Shown here in pieces: positions 22,571-33,670 of a DNA stretch of 64,000 nt (the first letter of the stretch is position 1; each line of letters starts with the position of its first letter). Under the pieces are notes generated by a model. It had not been told where the DNA came from, did not search any database, and saw only the letters and a list, made by a program, of their open reading frames with translations. Made by a program: the position numbers and the translations under genes. The stretch covers positions 13,516,001-13,580,000 of the forward strand of contig OZ116706.1 in the NCBI GenBank assembly GCA_964199315.1, in the 5' to 3' direction. The DNA is from Orbicella franksi. Taxonomy: Eukaryota.

Positions 22571-24424
22571 GGCCATTTTGTGAGAGAGTGCCTCAAGTCA
22601 AGTTTCTGTAAGATTTCCGGATGTCAATCCAAGCACTCCACATATCTCGAGAACCTGAGGAGACATCGCGTCGAGAGAATACTAATGAGCATGAGGTTTC
22701 AGCACCAGACAGCAATGCTGTAGGCAACGCCCAAAGCAACTTCATCAGCGCCGATGGTCAGTGTCCTTCAATTGGGGCCGGCAAATCAGCTACTGCCTTA
22801 CCAATAGTTCCTGTAAGGGTTAAGGCTAAAGGATCAAATAGATCAACTGTAACCTACGCCGTTCTCGATAGCGGCTTTAATACCACATTCTGTTCCAACA
22901 AGCTCGTGGAGACTTTGGGCATTGAAGGGGACAAGACGCGACTTTCCCTTACTACCCTCGGCAAGCAGAACTGCATAACGAGCTGCAATCTCTTCAGTCT
23001 GGAAGTATTTGATCTGGATGAGAATTACTTTGTTGATCTTCCGTCCGTGTTTTCAGTACCGAGCCTACCCGTGAGTAATGACAGTATTCCGACTCGAGGA
23101 TGTGATCAGCTTCCCTTACCTCGGAGATCTTCAAATCCGAACGATTGATTTGGATATTGGCTTGCTTATTGGATGTGACGTTTCAAAGGCCCTGGAACCT
23201 CATTAAACTCGTGTTAGTCAAGGCCAAGGCCCATTTGCCACTCGAATGATATTTGGTTGGACAGTGAATGGTCCCTTGGTGAAAATGGGCCAGCCTCAGC
23301 CAGCGTGCAACTTTGTAAAGGCCGACGAAGAACTTAGCCAGCAGTTTCGCACGTTCTGCGGCTGGGAATTCTCGGATTCCATTTGCGTCAGCAAACCAGC
23401 AATGTCTAAAGAAGACAAGCGTGCACTATCAATCACGAAGGAGTCGATCTGTTTGAAGGAGGGTCACTACCAGATAGATTTACCCTGGAAAGACGATGTG
23501 CTCTGTTTACCAAACAATCAAGCAATGGCAGAACACCGTTTGAAGTTACTGCGCAGAAGGTTATTTAAGAACCCAGACCTGCGTTCGAATGGTACCCCAG
23601 ACTCCACTGGAACACACCACCAGTGTAACATGGTACTTACCTCACCACCCTGTCGTGAACCCAAACAAGCCAGACAAGGTTCGTGTAGTGTTTACTGTGC
23701 CGCACGATACAACAGGGTGTCCCTTAACTCTCAGCTTATGCAGGGTCCAGACCTAACCAACACCTTGGTGGGAGTTCTGATTCGCTTTCATGTAGAGCCC
23801 ATTGCCATAATGTCTGACATCAAAGGAATGTTCCACCAGGTGCGTGTCAGCCCCAAGGATTGTGATGCTCTCCGCTTCCTATAGTGGCCGGAAAACGATT
23901 TCAGTAAGGATCCAGAAGATTACCAAATGTTGGTTCATTTATTTGGTGCCACCTCGTCCCCAAGTTGCGCTAATTTTGGCTTAAAGCAGACGGCAGATGA
24001 TAATCAAGAAATGTTCAGCAAAGAGGCAGTGAGAACTCTAAGGCGCAATTTCTATGTGGATGATTGTTTGAAGTCCATCAAAGGCGAAACCAAGGCAATA
24101 TCACTGGTATCAGAACTTCGCACACTGCTTTCCAAAGGGGGATTTCGGTTAACCAAATGGATTTCTAACTCCAGAAAAGTCATTGAGTCTGTACCTACAT
24201 CAGAAAGAGCAGTCTCGGTGAAGGATCATCTCCTCAACCAATAGCGTCTTGCACTATTACTAAAAATAGATTTTGTCACGTGAGATCCCATGAGACCCCC
24301 CACACAGACTCAGACAAACATTTCGATCTGCCAAAGGCATATGTATGTGCGAGGGCTGCAAGAGTGAAACAAAAATGAAGAAAATTTGGTGAAATCATGG
24401 AGTTAATAATTAGAGGGACAAAAA

Positions 24425-26038
24425 ATGGTTTCTACCAAACACTGCTGTTGGGGTGAGTTTAAAACAGACTCGAGGTATCCCGACAAATGGACAAAATCTC
24501 TCAAAGAGTTACAAGCATCAGGCAAGAAAGTCTTCATACCGTTCCCAAAACCGTCGCAAGACATCGCTAAGTGCAAGCGTTGGCTAGTAGCTTGTTCTCG
24601 GGAATTATTTACAGAGAAAAATATTATCAGAAATACTTATATTTGTGCTCTTCACTGGCCCGGAGAAAAAGGTCCCACGGCTGAATTTCCTGATCCGCTG
24701 AAAGCGAATCTAACACGAGAACAAGCGAGTCAAGCATGTGCTCCAAAGAGAAAAGCTCCGAGATCAAGAGCGGAACCAGTCACAAAGAAAGAAAAGTTAC
24801 ACAACAAAAACTGTGGTGAACAATTACTGGACTACTGTATACCGACTGTCGATCGCAAGTCACTAGAATCTGGATCAACGGTCGATGCCATCCTAAACAA
24901 ACTCAACGAATCTCTAACCAATGAAGAATGTAATGCGACGCCACATGTGTATGAGCACTCTACAGGAAAGCTGGTTTCTGATCAAGGCTCTCAGACCTTG
25001 TATTCTAAATACGAGTTATCCGCAAAGGTCGAGACCATGATTTTGAAGAATGATGTTGCCACGAGGAAACCTCAGGCTCCCACAATAGTAAGTACTCTAT
25101 CTTATGAAAACATCGTGCAAGATGCAAGTCTTATGAAACACTTCATTGGCCTCTCACCTCCACAGTTTGAGATTTTGCATAATTTTCTAGACGGCGTTTG
25201 TCCTTTGGAGACCATAAACTATTGGACTAGTAAAGATTGCCCTGCAACGGAAAATGCAAGAACTGGCCCAAGAAGTGATTTTTCATCAAGGGAGAAGCTT
25301 TTTATTTGCCTTCTGAGACTTAGGAGAGGATTTACTCTCAAGACTCTAGCAGCTCTTCTCAGTACACCAGAAAGAAAAATTGATCCATCCTATGTACGCA
25401 AAATTTTCACCACCTTTCTTCAGCTGATGTATGTAACGTTTAGAGACATGCAACACTTCATGTTTCCTCAGAGAGCCCAACTCAGCAGGTTCCTCCCCAA
25501 AGTTTTCAAAACCATGAGGAAAATATGGTGTATTGTTGACTGTACTGAGTTTAGAGTAGAATGCTCCAGGAGTTTTGCTAGGCAAGGGAACACTTTCTCT
25601 TCATACAAGCACACAAACACATTTAAGTGTCTCATTGCTGTAACTCCCAATGGCGGAGCATGCTTTGTGTCAGATTTGTTTGAAGGGGATATTGATGATG
25701 TTGCAATCTTCAAAGAAAGTGGGCTTATGAAACACCTGAAACCATATGATTTAGTATTGGCTGATCGGGGTTTTACTGTGCGGGAGCTGCTAAATCCACT
25801 CCAAGTGGAGTTAAAAATTCCATCATTTCTGAAAGGAAGAAAAACTCTTAGTGCTGCAGAGGAACTGGAGACGCATCGTATTGCTAAGGCTAGGATTCAT
25901 GTAGAACGTTTTAATGAACGCCTTAAGCAGTTCAAACTTGTTGGTCGGAAAATTCCTTTGTCTCTGGCCCCTCTTGCAACTCAAATGGTAATAGTTGCTT
26001 CATGCCTTGTCAATTTTCAGAACACTCTTTGTAAATAG
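24425..26038 (+). CDS. THAP-HTH-DDE_Tnp_4 transposase, intact 537 aa
   Basis: THAP-like FIPFPKP...CKRWL...YICALHW...FPDP; HTH LFICLLRLRRG; IVDCTE, LADRGF and RIHVERF catalytic triad; uninterrupted ORF. Confidence 0.93.
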   Translation: MVSTKHCCWGEFKTDSRYPDKWTKSLKELQASGKKVFIPFPKPSQDIAKCKRWLVACSRELFTEKNIIRNTYICALHWPGEKGPTAEFPDPLKANLTREQASQACAPKRKAPRSRAEPVTKKEKLHNKNCGEQLLDYCIPTVDRKSLESGSTVDAILNKLNESLTNEECNATPHVYEHSTGKLVSDQGSQTLYSKYELSAKVETMILKNDVATRKPQAPTIVSTLSYENIVQDASLMKHFIGLSPPQFEILHNFLDGVCPLETINYWTSKDCPATENARTGPRSDFSSREKLFICLLRLRRGFTLKTLAALLSTPERKIDPSYVRKIFTTFLQLMYVTFRDMQHFMFPQRAQLSRFLPKVFKTMRKIWCIVDCTEFRVECSRSFARQGNTFSSYKHTNTFKCLIAVTPNGGACFVSDLFEGDIDDVAIFKESGLMKHLKPYDLVLADRGFTVRELLNPLQVELKIPSFLKGRKTLSAAEELETHRIAKARIHVERFNERLKQFKLVGRKIPLSLAPLATQMVIVASCLVNFQNTLCK

Positions 26039-26384
26039 AGTTTTAATACAGAATAGTTGTGTGAAGACTGATTGAAATTTGTACTAGTGCAAGACCACAA
26101 GATTAAACTCACTCTGTATTGAGCACTGATGACTGTATATTGAGCATTTATTTTTATAAATCTTGAAAAAGTTATAGTAAGAAAGTTCAAAGAATATCCA
26201 TACCCTCCCCATGGAATGTATGATGCTAAACAGGAATAATATTCAGGTTAAAATGATTCTAACCTAGTTTGATTCTCAATTTTCTCGGTCTTCTAACCCT
26301 AATTATTCATTATCCATGAATAATTAGGGTTAAGAGACAAAGGAATTTCATTTTAACCTGAATTTCATTTTGACCTGCATCATA

Positions 26385-26518
26385 TACAAGGGGAGAGGCA
26401 CTGTAAGAGTCGAGTGTCCTGCCCAAGAGAACAATACAATGTCCCCAACCAGGGCTTGAACATGGACCGCACAATCCGTAGACAAGCACATCAAACCATG
26501 ATGCTACTGTGGCTCCCC
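26385..26518 (-). mobile_element. tRNA-derived SINE 5' half inside the ISL2EU spacer
   Basis: Reverse complement GGGGAGCCACAGTAGCATCATGGTT...GTTCAAGCCCTGG...CTTGGGCAGGACACTC...CAGTGCCTCTCCC; same family as 15070-15364. Confidence 0.8.
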
Positions 26519-27921
26519 AAGAGACATGGGTGGGTGGTTGGGGAGCAAAGCAAACAAAACTTTTCATTGGAGGTTAATTTGATATTTTCTGAAACAACAC
26601 ATTTTCTCCTTGTGATAATTCTTTTGCAAAAGAGGCTGCTGACCGGTAAGCAGATAGAAGCATTATAATGTAGTGGAAAAAAATTGCAGGCCTTGTATTT
26701 ATTCAAAAGAACTCAAAAAAAACTCACCAGTTAATAGTAATATGCTGATGTCTCAGTTGTATTACATGTGGTTTAGACATTTTTTTCTTAGACAAGAAGC
26801 CTTAATTTAATGAAAAATCAAATTCCTATTTGTAAGGGACACAAAACAATATCTCATTATTCTCAATACAATTGAAAAGGGTGGCAGACAATTAACAATC
26901 CATTCAATTTGACATTAAATTATATTTTTTATACAAACAACATTTTGAAAAATAAAAGTTGTGTTCAGTATACAGTACTTATTTATCTGAATTTACAAGA
27001 TACTTGTCAATGCTCTTTTCATCTATATACAAAAGATACTAATAGAACAACGCTCTATAAAAAAATCCATATGGAAAATTAAATTTCACAACTCGTAAGT
27101 TGTGGGTGTACAGCAATAATAATGTAATAGACCTCTCTCAATTCAAAATTCTTAAATTTTTGTGCCATGATTTAATTTAAATCTACCATTCTTGTCTTAT
27201 AAGGTAAGTACCATGACTGTGCTACTTAAATATAGAGGAAATTAAGAACAACAAAATTTACAATCACCATTTACCCTTTTCATCAAACAATGTTCCTCAC
27301 CAAGCCCTGTCCCCACCAACAGAACATCAACATGCTGCCACTGAACAATTATCAAATTGAAAATAGATGCTAAAATATGAATGGCAGCCCAGGAACAAAG
27401 CAAAAATATGTGTTAACAGCAATCCTCATACATTTTAACCATTAAAGCCCAACTATCCACATATAAATTCTCCTTACTGATGTACATACATTTTTTATGG
27501 TATTAGCCGTAATGGGTAATCATTTTATAAATTCTCATCAGCATCTCTTTGGATTAAGTATCATACTGTGAGAAGAACTTGTATGTTGGTCACTCTTGGC
27601 ACTCAAAGAGTTTTAAGAACAAAGTTCTTAGTCTATAGTACTTATCTTTCCTTTAGTTAGAAAAATCGTTACATTACTCTTCTGCTGATAATGCACAAGT
27701 ATTGCAGTTAAGATTTCAAAACTAAACAAACATAGCGAGTTGGTAGTACTAGTACACATGCTTTTTTACCTAATTTACAGTAGACCCAAAAAGAAATACT
27801 GTAAGCTCATGGGGAATTCTAAGTTTTTTTTCTTATATACAGTCATCATGGAATAGCTTAATATTCCATTATGGTTTGAGTTCATGAAAAGGAACATTTG
27901 GGATCATATTTTTCCATTTAC

Positions 27922-30900
27922 CTAACTACAATATACTAAAAAGCTTAACGAAAATCCCACTGGCTCATGAAACATAGCTGGAGAAACCTGGATTCCCTTC
28001 CTGGAAGCCCTTCCTTGTAGATTCTTGCAGCCCATCATACATGTACCAGTTATTCTCAAAAAAAAAATACAGATATAGTGCCCTCCATTCCAAAGTGTTA
28101 CTCCATACAGTTTAAAACTTTTCCCAAATACTGAAACTGAAAGTGGTGTAATTTGACAGTTTAAGATAACCTCCTCTGCTCAGTAGGTCAACAGAAAACA
28201 CAAGAAATGATTTTAAATTCAACATCGAACGAGAGCTGCTCACCCTCACACCCTCACAATGCCATGACATGTTTGCATTGCCATTTTCATCTATTGTGAC
28301 ATCCTCGCTGAAGGGGGTTCCTTCTGAAGGCTGGCTTCCAAATTTCCTTCCACAGTTAGAATCTGGTGGTTGCAGCCAGTAATAAAGGGCATCCAGAAAT
28401 GCATTGTTATTGATGTGCTGGGAGGGTTGTGGCAGTATTACTGACAAAGATTGGACTGTGTGTACTTGCAATGGGCAAGTATTTACGCAGCAAGTTGATG
28501 TGATGATGCTTGTCAGGTAGGGACGGAGGAGCATCAAGAAGAAATCCCCTTCATTACCATACAAATCCAGGGTACCAGCCACAACTGGAAATGTGAAAAG
28601 GAAAAATTGCCATATTGATTATTTATATCATATTATCCTTTTTTTGCTTATTATCATGACTATAAACATTTTAACATAATAAGACTTCTGAACAAACACC
28701 CATGTTTGTTGTTAAATAAATAATCCTTATAAAAAAATAGTGAGGCATACATACCTTGCTGTTGTTGTGGTAGAGACTGCAGTATTAACAATTTTGCATC
28801 TGCATACTGGCCATCATCTATGAGCTTCAGTGCTGTACCTATTGTATGACCTGATTCTGGAAGGTCCTCGAGCTTTACTTTGTTTGATTTAACTAGGGCT
28901 TGGAAAATAATTAGCCAATTATCCAAAGGACAAGTATTGGTAAGTGTCACTCCAGTACTTGTCAGTCCACCCCAGGGAAAAATAGTTAGCTCGTGATCTT
29001 GTTGACTAGCAGATTTAGGGTTACTGGCTGGACCAGTAACCGAAAGAAGGAGAGCTTCTGCAGCATTGATTTCTGCTTGGGTATATAAGCTGTCAGCAGG
29101 AAAGGGTTGTTCAGACTCTGTGACAGATACTGGCAAATCAGATGCTGTGGTTTCACACAGGCCAGATAGGGATGCAGGTGACACAGGTGTTACAAAGACT
29201 CTGCTCTTAGTCGCTGATACAGATGCAGGGGGTGCATTAGGTTCTACAGAGCCAACAAGTGATGCTGAAGAAGTACATGTGGTAGGGGTTTCACCCTCAA
29301 AGCATCTGTCAGGTGATGCAGGGGATGCATCAGGTTCCAGGGAGCAAACAGGTGATGCTGAAGAAGTACATGTGGTAGGGTCTCCAAATTCCAAGCAACT
29401 GTCAGGTGATGCAGGAAATGATTCAAAAGAATCCAAACAGTCAGCAGCCTCAGCTAAAACAAATGGCACTAGATCCCTGGAGACACGCATTTCAAAGATT
29501 TCTGGGGCAATAACATGTGTCCATAAGGCCGTGAGATTACCCAAAATCTCCTGAATGAGGGGTTCATCCCTTGGTATCCTTTCTACGGAATCAGGACCAC
29601 TTGCAGCATGTAGAATAAAATCACAATACTTTCTGTCAGTGACGAGAAGGATTTGTTGACACTGATAGTAATAGGCATGTGAACGCTTCAGGATACACTT
29701 TCCATCCTCTACCTTAAAACGCTGCCTGCTGAGAACACTTTTCACAACTGGGGAGGTGGGAGTTGTCACTGTCTCAACACTGTACTGTTTCAAGAGTTTT
29801 AAAGATTTAATCTCAATAACAGTGTCACTGTCAACCAGACCATCAGGAGAACAGCCAAGGAATGGAAACTTGGGGTTGACCCAAAACCCTGATGGGTAGA
29901 CTTTCACATTTCGGACCCTCTCGTACTTAAGTATGGCCTTTGGTTCACATTCAAGGCCATAACGCATCCAGTATGTCTGGATATGTTCTAACTCAAGTCT
30001 CCAAATATCAGAAAAAATAAATTTGCTTGCTTCTATGGCTGCATTTGGCTGACACTCAATGACAAGTTTTCCAACTTTGAAAGCAGAAAGACACTTAGAT
30101 GCTGTCAATCTGCACCATCTTTGAAAGAACCATTTTTCAGATTTACTTTGTTCTTGTGTTCCTGGGATTTCCATCAAGGCTTTAGGCTTCAGATTTTTAT
30201 GTAAGGCACTCACTTGCTCCAACAACACTCCTTTTCTCTCACAATCAAGGTTGTAGTCACCGTAGGTGTACTGGAGCTGAGTTTCCCACATTGAAACTCC
30301 TTTACCCTCAGCTTGTGAAAGCCATTGCAAGTTCCCCAGAAACTTGTTTATGTGGTGCACATTGACATTTCGATATTTAGCTGGCCTCGGATCGAAATCA
30401 ATCACAGGCAAAATGGCTTGCTTTTTCTTTCCAGGGTATTTGGCATCGCTTAACCTCTTAGGATTTTTGTTCCTCTTCTTGCCTTTATTCCAAGAACATT
30501 CTTGGCTTGTGCATGGTTTTGTTAAAACCGTTCCGTGTTTCTGAACGTAGTCAAGTACATAAAATAAAACCGCTACAACATGACTACAACGTCCCAAAGA
30601 CAAAGCCCGGCAAGGTTCACATGAGGCGTGAAGAACAGCGCCACTGTTCACAGATATAATCACAACAACATTGTGCGGTAGCTCTGTTCTCATCAAAGGC
30701 CAAACATGCGCTCTCACAAAATAGTGATCGGCGTTCTGCGTGTCCATCACATCGTGTACAAAGCCTGTATCCACGTACTTCCTTCCATTTTTCATTGGCT
30801 TATCGGTCATATGTCCCAGTCCGTCGTCGATGTCTGCTAGATCATTTGCAAGCGATTCTAACGCGTAGTAATATACCTGGCCGTAGTTAAAGAGAGAAGG

Positions 30901-31245
30901 AATGCAATGAGATGGAAAGTCCCGCCAGCCGGTCGACGGAATAAATGGCAGCGAAATCGAGCTTCCAGTTGCTTGTATCTGCGGACTTTCTTTAAGAACC
31001 TTGGCAGCGAACCATTTACCATTGTCAATGCTTGCATCGAGCGTGTGGTGATTCCCACACTTTATGCAGTCGCTCACATGTTTCACAAGGTCATCGCGTT
31101 TACCGCTCAGTTTTAAGCCCCTGCACTTTAACCACCGTTTTAGCTGGTCAACAGTGTATTCCTGTGGATCTCTGTCAAATTTAGAACCAGGAATGTTGTC
31201 ATCCTCGGTTAAAACCGTTAAAGATTGAAGCAAACTGCTTGCCAT
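27922..31245 (-). CDS. SAP-SWIM-YqaJ (lambda-exonuclease fold) protein with spliced C-terminal USP-like cysteine peptidase domain; frameshifts in the last exon
   Basis: SAP QLKRWLKCRGLKLSGKRDDLV; SWIM C.PC...GRCSH; YqaJ QRWCRLTAS, SPDG, EIK and YYYQCQQ; Cys box NTCPLDNW; phase-1 GT-AG intron 28585-28754; GGHY, WYMYDG and LSFLVYC in shifted frames. Confidence 0.85.
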
Positions 31246-32566
31246 TCACAAATTTTCCCTTAGGATTACTCAGGATTTGGGTCTTTGATTGTCTGAGTCT
31301 CGAGGGGGTCTGAAATTTCATGACGTCATTAGTGCAGAACGCTATTGCCTTGTGAACGTGCTCTGGGAATCCGATGGGATGTCGAGACGGACACCTTTGG
31401 CTTTAAGATATCCTTAAAGGACAAGCCTTCTACCAGAAGAGGAATTCTCTCCATCGTGAGTTCCATCTATGACCCTCTGGGTTTTGCTGCACCTTTCATC
31501 CTTTCAGCCAGTCATCTACTGCAGAACTTGTGTCGAAGAGGCTTAGGATGGGACGACATAGTGTCAAATGAAGACATTGCTATCTAGCAGAGTTGGCTCG
31601 GAGATCTCCCTAAGCTGGAGTCACTTTCAAGACGCCTGACTTCGGCGACATCACAACTTGTCAGATCCACCACTTTGCTGATGCCAGTCAGATCGCTTAT
31701 GGCGCAGTGTCCTACCTTCGCATCACAAATGCGCAAGGCCTCATTCATTGTTCATTTGTCATTCGGAAATTCCGGTTGTCACCACTCAAGCTTCTTACTA
31801 TTCCTCAATTAGAATTGAGCGCAGCTGTTGTCGCAGCCAGACTGGACAAGATCATCAGAACTGAAACCGACATAAAGGTTGATGAGTCTGTGTTTTGGAC
31901 CGACAGCACTTGCGTTTTGGGATACCTCCGAAACGACAGCAAGCGCTTTCATACCTTTGTGGCCAATTGAATAGGTACAATACAGGAGGTCGCGGCTCCT
32001 TCCCAGGAGGCACGTTGACTCCTTGTAAAACCCAGCGCACAATGCATCGCGTGGGCTCTCCGCAGAGGCTCTGTTAAATAATAGTCGATGGCTCAGAGGC
32101 CCTGATTTCCTGTGGCGTCCAGAAGCTTCTTGGCCTGTTGCACCCAGTCCCGTCCTGGAGGTTTCACCAGCTGACCCATCAACAGCTGAGGTATACTCCA
32201 ATACACAGAAATCAGAGAGGAACCGATGAACAAGATCGTTGAACGATTTTCCTCGTGATACGGCTTGAAGAAATTCATGGCTTGGATCCTTCGCTATCGT
32301 GATAATCTCCGATCAGCAGTTGAGCAACGTAGGAGTGGTTACACAGCAGTCACTAAGAAAGCAAAGATAGTCCCAATTACCCTTGAAGAGTTACGAAATG
32401 CAGAAAACGAAATTGTGAGACACGTTCAAGAAGAAAGTTTCGAAGAGGCATTGGCCATATTGAGAAAGGCATCATCCACGCCATCATCCTCACCCCCCCC
32501 TCAGGTGAACAGAACTCAAAGCGTCAGGTCAAGAAATCGAGCAAGATCGTCAAACTCGATCCGCGG

Positions 32567-33670
32567 ATGACTGACGGCTTGTTGTGTGTTGGGGGGAGGA
32601 TAGCCAATGGACCCTTCCAGCAGCGTGTAAAGCATCCAGTAGTTTTGCCAAAGTCTCACTGCATTGTTCCCCTCATCATTCGCCAGCATCATCATGTTTC
32701 TGGTAATTCAGGAGTGGAACATGTTCTTAGCCTGATTGGAGAGAAGTTCTGGATTGTTGGCACCAGAACAGCAGTGCGAAGATATCTAAATACCTGTGTT
32801 GCTTGCAAGAGAAGACAAGCCCATGTTGATGAACAGAAAATGGCGGATTTGCCACTAGACAGAATTACACCTGACAAACCTCCATTCACCTATGTGGGAG
32901 TCGACTGCTTTGGCCCGTTCCTGATTCGCCGTGGAAGAACAGAAGTTAAGCGTTACGGCGTGCTGTACGCCTGCCTGGTGGTATGTGCTGTTCACATAGA
33001 AGTGGCCCACAATCTGGACACCGATTCGTTTCTAAAGAGTTTCAGGCGATTTGTTGCAAGAAGGGGATCTCCGGAACTGATAAGATCCGACAACGGCAGC
33101 AATTTTGAATCAGGAGAACGCAAACTTAACCACTCTATCAAAGAATGGAACCAGGAAAAAATTGCCGATTTCCTACTTCAAAGAAACGTCCAGTGGGCAT
33201 TCAACCCTCCATGTGGGTCCCACCAAGGCGGTCGATGGGAACGTTGCATAAGGACAGTGAGAAAGGTATTAAACGCACTGGTCAGGGAGCAAGTACTGGA
33301 TGACAAAGGGCTGCCAACATTCATGTGCAAAGCGGAGTCAATCGTAAACAGCAGGCCCTTGACAAAGGTCTCAGACGAACCCCTCACGCCTAATCACCTT
33401 CTCTTTTGGTACAGCCAACCGTTTCCTCCTGGAATCTTTGCCAAGGAGGACATATACTCCAGACGCAGGAGGAGGCAAATCCAGTACTTATCGGATGTAT
33501 TTTGGCGCAGATGGGTAAAGGAATATCTCCCGACTTTGCAACAAAGGCAGAAATGGTTCAGGCTGCGCCGAAATTTTAAAATCGGAGACATCGTACTGCT
33601 CACAGATAAGAAGTCACCAAGGGGTTTATGGCCACTTGCACGCACCGGCATTAACACAAACCGCTGTTAA
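32567..33670 (+). pseudogene. BEL/Pao integrase (H2C2 + DDE core + C-terminal DUF5641-like)
   Basis: HH...H..VEH, C..C, GVDCFGP, SDNG, RWERCIR and FWRRWVKEYLPTLQQRQKW. Confidence 0.9.

Follow-up and report, generated by a model that had tools for sequence, protein, structure and literature searches.

We analysed a stretch of 64,000 nucleotides of Orbicella franksi DNA (assembly GCA_964199315.1, contig OZ116706.1, positions 13,516,001 to 13,580,000 of the forward strand), which is referred to here as the window and to which all coordinates apply. At 24243-31343 this transposon-rich animal DNA carries a 7,101-bp cut-and-paste DNA transposon, an ISL2EU element of the PHIS superfamily with a convergent pair of genes. 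One gene encodes the transposase. The other, an accessory gene on the minus strand, very probably consists of two exons and joins a nuclease to a domain of the USP fold.

The ends of the element are short terminal inverted repeats (TIRs). The left TIR AGCGTCTTGCACTA (24243-24256, plus strand) matches the right one (31330-31343, minus strand), its imperfect inverse and partner in the inverted-repeat pair, at 12 of 14 bases, and a sub-terminal GACCCCC..ACTCAGACAA motif that follows the left TIR is common to the right end. Two copies of an AT target-site duplication (TSD) flank the element, at 24241-24242 and 31344-31345. The left copy was identified by comparison of the flanks and by restoration of the host frame, as deletion of 24243-31345 in silico gave back a continuous host pol frame. 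The right copy was identified from the empty site in RNA data, which were taken from public runs labelled coral or coral metagenome: contigs from two libraries (runs X4 and X1) fuse the left flank directly to 31344. In other contigs the element exits at 31346-31349 into unrelated sequence, and other insertions of it therefore exist. The target A|AT|T described for ISL2EU (PMC4482050) is also that of the window element. Published ISL2EU elements have a DDE_Tnp_4 transposase, a YqaJ second gene, an AT TSD in A|AT|T and short TIRs, all of which were found here. Together with the empty site, the transposase domain, the YqaJ gene and the TSD in its A|AT|T context bear out the assignment to a cut-and-paste ISL2EU element made in a preliminary description of this DNA. 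The host site is the pol of a BEL/Pao-like long terminal repeat retroelement (23927-24242 and 31344-33670, plus strand), with a fragment from the reverse transcriptase side before the element and RNase H and integrase open reading frames (ORFs) after it. Insertion-free copies of this retroelement were present in the RNA-library contigs.

The transposase gene (24425-26038, plus strand) is an intact ORF of 537 amino acids (aa) with Pfam matches to DDE_Tnp_4 (E 8.2e-41) and HTH_Tnp_4 (E 0.005), and a weak match to THAP (E 0.002, 19.3 bits, under the Pfam cut-off of 23.9). An AT-rich spacer (26039-27921; GC content 0.33 over 26001-28000) lies between the convergent genes. The accessory ORF (31245-28660, minus strand) is 861 aa long; exon 1 covers 28755-31245 and its open frame continues into the intron to 28660. 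It encodes a SAP domain at residues 29-55 (31081-31161; Pfam E 2.3e-6), a SWIM-like zinc motif CEPC..C.H (CxxC..CxH) at residues 209-222 (30580-30621), and a YqaJ or lambda-exonuclease-like nuclease at residues 372-538 (29632-30132; Pfam E 1.5e-11) with its SPDG..EIK motif at 29806-29850. These are followed by a Pro/Ser/Thr-rich, low-complexity linker with an internal repeat (28990-29631), which varies in length and sequence among the homologues. The order SAP, SWIM, YqaJ, linker and NTCPLDNW had been proposed earlier; by Pfam matches and coordinates it held for all parts except SWIM, which stands at the level of a motif. Pfam SWIM gave no match in the window protein or in two homologues, even at E 10, and an AlphaFold2 model of this region, built on nine aligned sequences, was unusable (pLDDT, the predicted local distance difference test, 40.5). 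In intact copies the accessory protein consists, in this order, of SAP, the SWIM-like zinc motif, the YqaJ 5'-3' exonuclease, the disordered Pro/Ser linker and a USP-fold domain of about 290 aa.

Exon 1 is separated from exon 2 by a phase-1 intron of the spliceosomal type, 170 nt long (28585-28754, minus strand; GC content 0.25). Its donor is GTATGT, starting at 28754, and its acceptor is a polypyrimidine-CAG that ends at 28585. The predicted junction combines G and TT to a Val codon, giving the product ..QQQQ-VV-AGTLDLYGNE.. in frame with the ORF at 28582-28115. Homologues were collected with the last 172 residues of the 861-aa ORF as the query. Two intronless proteins (P0008 and P0009) read ..QPQVVSGTLDLYGNE.. 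straight across the predicted junction, and this is the product predicted from the splice sites of the window. Another intronless homologue, P0010 (943 aa), contains the whole C-terminal region to ..LLSYLIFCI, and on its 5.6-kb contig it adjoins a convergent 513-aa DDE_Tnp_4 gene in the same element architecture. Four further proteins (P0001, P0002, P0003 and P0007) end right after ..QQG, which is the same donor position.

The intron was also found in two other lineages, L004 and L006. L004 is about 52% identical in this region; its intron of about 352 nt runs from the donor CAAG|GTATGT to the acceptor TTAG|TTGTGGCTGG, its exon 2 is intact with an ORF of 222 aa, and the transposase gene convergent with it encodes 536 aa. 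L006 has the acceptor ACAG|TTGTGG, an intron of about 760-800 nt and an intact exon 2 with an ORF of 217 aa (P0193); this exon shares 88% identity with the window over the first 144 residues and lies about 2 kb from a transposase remnant. In both lineages the intron has the site, phase and GT..AG boundaries of the window copy, and its lengths differ. The ratio of non-synonymous to synonymous substitution rates (dN/dS) between L004 and L006 was 0.19 for exon 2, which indicates that exon 2 is translated and hence that splicing is required. On this comparison of sequences we regard the intron at 28585-28754 as real, and the earlier claim that splicing joins the two exons in frame is supported by the intronless P0008 and P0009, by the intron shared with L004 and L006 and by the dN/dS value. 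We also considered exon 2 as a separate gene or a chance ORF, which was ruled out by the intronless homologues, the intact exon 2 of L004 and L006, and the same dN/dS. Purifying selection keeps SAP, a nuclease of the lambda-exonuclease type and a USP-fold domain whose triad is conserved together in one protein. As the phase-1 intron parts the Cys box in exon 1 from the His and Asp boxes in exon 2, only the spliced product contains the domain. It is overlooked by gene callers and by Pfam, owing to the intron and to the lack of a curated model. Among polyadenylated (polyA) reads of run X23, depth was 0 in the bin 28606-28739 and about 3 on either side. Contigs from the RNA libraries keep the intron, and these may represent DNA or pre-mRNA.

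Exon 2 (27922-28584, minus strand, with the stop codon at 27924-27922) encodes the fingers of the USP-like domain together with its His/Asp half, and it is broken in the window copy. Its intact natural counterparts are P0193 of L006, the 222-aa ORF of L004 and P0013. Alignment with the intact exon-2 copies located three frame shifts: one extra T at 28150-28151 (frame C to A), a 10-nt homopolymer that is one base short at 28053-28062 (frame A to C), and seven extra bases at 27997-28005 (frame C to A). Only the first two had been recognised in the preliminary description, but three (+1, -1 and +7 nt) are needed; all boxes are present, and WYMYDG and the terminal LSFLVYCS-stop lie in different frames. 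The frame through both exons is therefore interrupted by three indels in exon 2, and the full domain cannot be encoded by the window copy unless some of them are assembly errors. The copy is either decayed or partly mis-assembled, with the homopolymer as the obvious suspect for an assembly error. The same sites were compared in reads and contigs from other copies with at least 95% identity to the window. At the first site, four of four polyA reads and both long contigs had one base fewer at 28150. An extra A after 28057 was found at the second site in seven of seven reads and in both contigs, and at the third site both contigs were without six bases at 27997 and one at 28005. Because other copies show complementary differences at all three sites, frame-intact copies of the subfamily exist and are present in the RNA libraries.

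The C-terminal domain extends from FPWGG to LVYCS (27925-28980, minus strand), with the intron and the three frame shifts inside. Based on an alignment of 34 sequences, AlphaFold2 produced a model with a pLDDT of 95.3 and a predicted template modelling (TM) score of 0.89. The palm-thumb-fingers arrangement of USPs was found in this model, and the best 50 Foldseek matches in the PDB were all USP catalytic domains. The alignment showed the fixed motifs PWGG, NTC.(I/V)DN, G.E, CS...CP, C, C.G.R, G.H(Y/F) and W..YDG, and by alignment the conserved Cys, His and Asp (Asn) boxes stand at the positions of the triad. An exhaustive phmmer search with residues 645-943 of P0010 returned 239 proteins at E<=1e-3. 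When all the collected proteins were aligned to the family profile, the predicted catalytic Cys (the NTC of NTCPLDN; codon 28930-28932, minus strand) was found as Cys in 154 of 159 members. The predicted catalytic His (GGHY; 28078-28080, minus strand) was His in 95 of 100, and the predicted catalytic Asp (WYMYDG; 28034-28036, minus strand) was Asp in 85 of 91 and Asn in 3. Four zinc-type cysteines are kept in 94-98% of the members. The coordinates given earlier for the Cys, His and Asp codons, and for the splice sites, all agree with ours.

Comparison of the family profile with PDB sequences gave weak matches to USP15 (E 0.05) and CYLD. In these, G.H(F/Y) falls on GGHY of USP15, and the D of YD falls on the first D of FDD in WYYFDD, which we take to be the catalytic Asp from our own count on the USP7 sequence. 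A single-sequence phmmer search against PDB sequences returned chance matches only, and Pfam assigned no family at all to the C-terminal pieces of the window or to the domain of P0010, even at E 10. Based on the model, we interpret the C-terminal extension as a predicted USP-fold cysteine peptidase domain with a four-cysteine fingers module, belonging to the C14orf28/DRIP1 branch. The preliminary description had called it a USP/C19 peptidase and had named fold prediction as the check. The AlphaFold2 model and the Foldseek matches agree with the fold, whereas membership in the canonical Pfam UCH/C19 family did not hold. In the fold comparison, enzymes acting on ubiquitin, ISG15 and SUMO score alike; neither the sequence nor the fold reveals the substrate.

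Among Swiss-Prot models the best matches were mouse and human DRIP1/C14orf28 (Q4KL13 and Q4W4Y0; E 2.5e-19, TM 0.70, 23% identity), and canonical USPs were well behind (TM <=0.5, E about 1e-8). The chordate C14orf28 cluster also came first in the Atlas shape search (TM 0.74), a language-model feature search likewise points to C14orf28, and phmmer gave E 1.7e-8 to a Mercenaria protein named C14orf28 homolog by NCBI. Vertebrate C14orf28 was compared by structure only, and the search with the Mercenaria homologue returned only itself. C14orf28/DRIP1 is the best structural match overall (TM 0.69-0.74), but it is a host protein in its own right, about 310 aa long, without nuclease, SAP or transposon context. 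Human C14orf28 has independently been classed as a deubiquitinase domain of the papain-like type, with a second module that resembles fingers, and is among the proteins that retain catalytic residues (PMC10318531). The coral domain shares 9-16% identity with canonical C19 peptidases (USP1, USP7, USP14 and USP35; also USP18, USPL1 and CYLD), and differs from them in being compact (about 290 aa) and in its family-specific PWGG and G.E motifs. The third-best structural match in Swiss-Prot was the C-terminus (residues 782-1053) of the NOF-FB 120.7-kDa protein of D. melanogaster (P16320; E 6.7e-12, TM 0.56, 16% identity), the N-terminal part of which is unrelated. This fold comparison suggests that a USP/C14orf28-like domain may be present there too.

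The named relatives of the protein with both YqaJ and this domain are from anthozoans (Desmophyllum, Pocillopora, Stylophora and Nematostella). In other combinations the domain is found as well. P0154 (L008, 1032-3389) is a protein of 785 aa on a short contig and combines Integrase_H2C2 and rve with a USP-like domain in which NTC, GHF and the four Cys are present. Further examples are a 1150-aa Actinia protein, GCM-domain and SWIM-type proteins, and entries annotated as USP-domain proteins. In AlphaFold DB clusters, the same fold was seen near the C-terminal half of large GCM domain-containing proteins (e.g. A0A0H5R1N7, E3L2J3, F4RLB4 and A0A2N5TJL9). Several of the GCM-domain accessions are presumably rust-fungus proteins, and the GCM-domain proteins may be of the transposase type.

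A second ISL2EU-like pair at L004 881-3438 consists of a 425-aa DDE_Tnp_4 gene and a convergent 401-aa SWIM-YqaJ gene. Its short SWIM-YqaJ protein has the canonical CxC..CxH SWIM motif and ends 75 bp from the transposase gene. The fusion, noted beforehand as a feature of the ISL2EU accessory gene, was found in the P0010, L004 and L006 lineages and not in this neighbouring short form. The existence of the short form indicates that the domain is a lineage-specific addition and is not essential to ISL2EU transposition as such. In published work no more than a YqaJ or DNA-binding protein is ascribed to the second gene of ISL2EU (PMC4482050, PMC9179366, PMC4122938), whereas here it is about 940 aa and has in addition SAP and a C-terminal USP-fold peptidase. 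The limitation of the domain to one ISL2EU lineage may explain these YqaJ-only descriptions. The searchable literature, which does not cover Repbase entries, contained nothing that ties ISL2EU or YqaJ to a peptidase, nor anything that ties C14orf28 to transposable elements. The earlier statement that the fusion is not known to have been described for ISL2EU agrees with its absence from the searchable papers. In that literature no paper connects ISL2EU with a C14orf28-type domain, and each is described on its own.

Ulp1/C48 peptidases are found in Mutator-like elements, among them those of plants, and OTU peptidases in Helitron-type elements. These transposons share with the present one the concept of a ubiquitin or ubiquitin-like (Ubl) cysteine peptidase beside or fused to mobility proteins; here, however, the fold is that of USPs, the transposon superfamily is another and the peptidase is fused to an exonuclease. 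With the coral element, the USP fold would join Ulp1 and OTU among the peptidases known from transposons. An exonuclease tethered to a USP-type peptidase also offers a testable idea of how such elements may deal with double-strand breaks of their own or escape control by the host.

Several of our results weigh against the interpretation of this gene as a spliced nuclease-peptidase with a role at breaks. The RNA evidence for splicing is weak, with a depth of about 3 and no junction at the reporting threshold. The profile match to USP15 is marginal at its E of 0.05, and neither the window pieces nor P0010 matched Pfam UCH (PF00443), UCH_1 (PF13423) or Peptidase_C98 (PF15499), even at E 10. The domain is also free-standing, fused to an integrase or part of other large proteins without the nuclease. 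Finally, the family profile finds no USP-like domain in the short SWIM-YqaJ protein of the second L004 pair.

As to function, we tentatively propose a role in repair, to which we assign somewhat less than an even chance. The domain would act in trans, as an active ubiquitin/ubiquitin-like isopeptidase. Through SAP and the zinc motif the protein would be anchored to DNA or chromatin, both at the donor site left by excision and at the transposon ends; the exonuclease would resect the breaks, and ubiquitin-type marks on chromatin or repair factors would be removed by the peptidase. Repair might then proceed via resection-dependent, homology-directed routes, an outcome that would help the element to survive or to gain copies. 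The one observation that argues for this mechanism is the fixed physical fusion of the domain to SAP, a DNA-binding module, and to a nuclease that acts on DNA ends. Several USPs, such as USP1, act on repair factors. For the architecture and the repair mechanism jointly, which together make up our best explanation of the locus, we consider the chances to be even.

The main rival to the repair mechanism is an anti-silencing or anti-host effector, which we consider unlikely but the strongest of the alternatives. The peptidase would then remove SUMO or ubiquitin from host chromatin-silencing or restriction factors and so keep the element transcribed and mobile; neither the nuclease nor the breaks made by the element would play a part in this. 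A general role of this kind fits the non-nuclease contexts of the domain as well as the repair role does: the module recurs with unrelated mobile-element proteins (the P0154 integrase, NOF-FB and the GCM/SWIM-type proteins), it is dispensable in one ISL2EU lineage (L004), and peptidases of the Ulp1 type are carried by plant Mutator-like elements. Yet the fusion to the nuclease via a long linker is stable across lineages that are 45% identical, which suggests a joint site of action, and nothing connects the protein with silencing factors.

It is improbable that the domain is a catalytically dead, non-protease scaffold for ubiquitin/Ubl binding or docking, comparable to the pseudo-USP of PAN2. 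USP-like domains of PAN2 were among the structural matches, the domain is too divergent for Pfam, and no activity of C14orf28/DRIP1 was reported in the literature found. Against this, Cys, His and Asp are kept in 93-97% of the members, in the NTC..DN and G.H(Y/F) contexts typical of active USPs, and C14orf28 likewise retains its catalytic residues (PMC10318531). A cis-acting protease that cuts its own protein, for instance in the Pro/Ser linker, and so frees the nuclease and the peptidase is a shade less probable again. The long, variable and disordered linker lies directly upstream of the domain, and viral papain-like folds often process themselves. The variable linker is, however, without an evident conserved cleavage motif (e.g. 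Gly-Gly-like), the USP fold with its fingers module is one that grips a ubiquitin-like globule, and free-standing members of the family have nothing to process. That we are dealing with chance frames or a decayed captured host fragment, the intron being an insertion that ends the gene, is very improbable indeed: the three frame shifts of the window copy and the intron-keeping RNA-library contigs could be taken that way, but intronless homologues encode the entire domain in one ORF, intron-bearing lineages have an intact exon 2 under purifying selection, and the family has 239 matches at E<=1e-3 and a very confident AlphaFold2 model.

A wider idea, which we regard as rather doubtful, is that the C14orf28/DRIP1-type USP domain is a mobile-element module recruited repeatedly by unrelated transposons (the ISL2EU nuclease, the integrase fusion, NOF-FB and the GCM/SWIM-type proteins). 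Vertebrate C14orf28/DRIP1 would then descend from a transposon copy, and the transposon version would be an active ubiquitin/SUMO isopeptidase that either steers break repair or blocks silencing. The present family raises the question of such a transposon origin of C14orf28/DRIP1. It also gives this uncharacterised human predicted deubiquitinase many relatives under selection, which helps to define its conserved sites.

Rearranged forms of the element were also seen in the RNA data. Ten reads from polyA libraries, with eight start points, join 28111 to 30505 and skip 2,393 bases. This joint was rejected as a splice because it has no GT-AG boundaries, and it most likely represents a non-autonomous derivative with an internal deletion, either present in the sample or transcribed there. 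In a contig of run X1, tandem copies of the left-end repeat (ATAGCGTCTTGCA) are joined to position 31119, a possible sign of a very short form of the element, rearranged or miniature.

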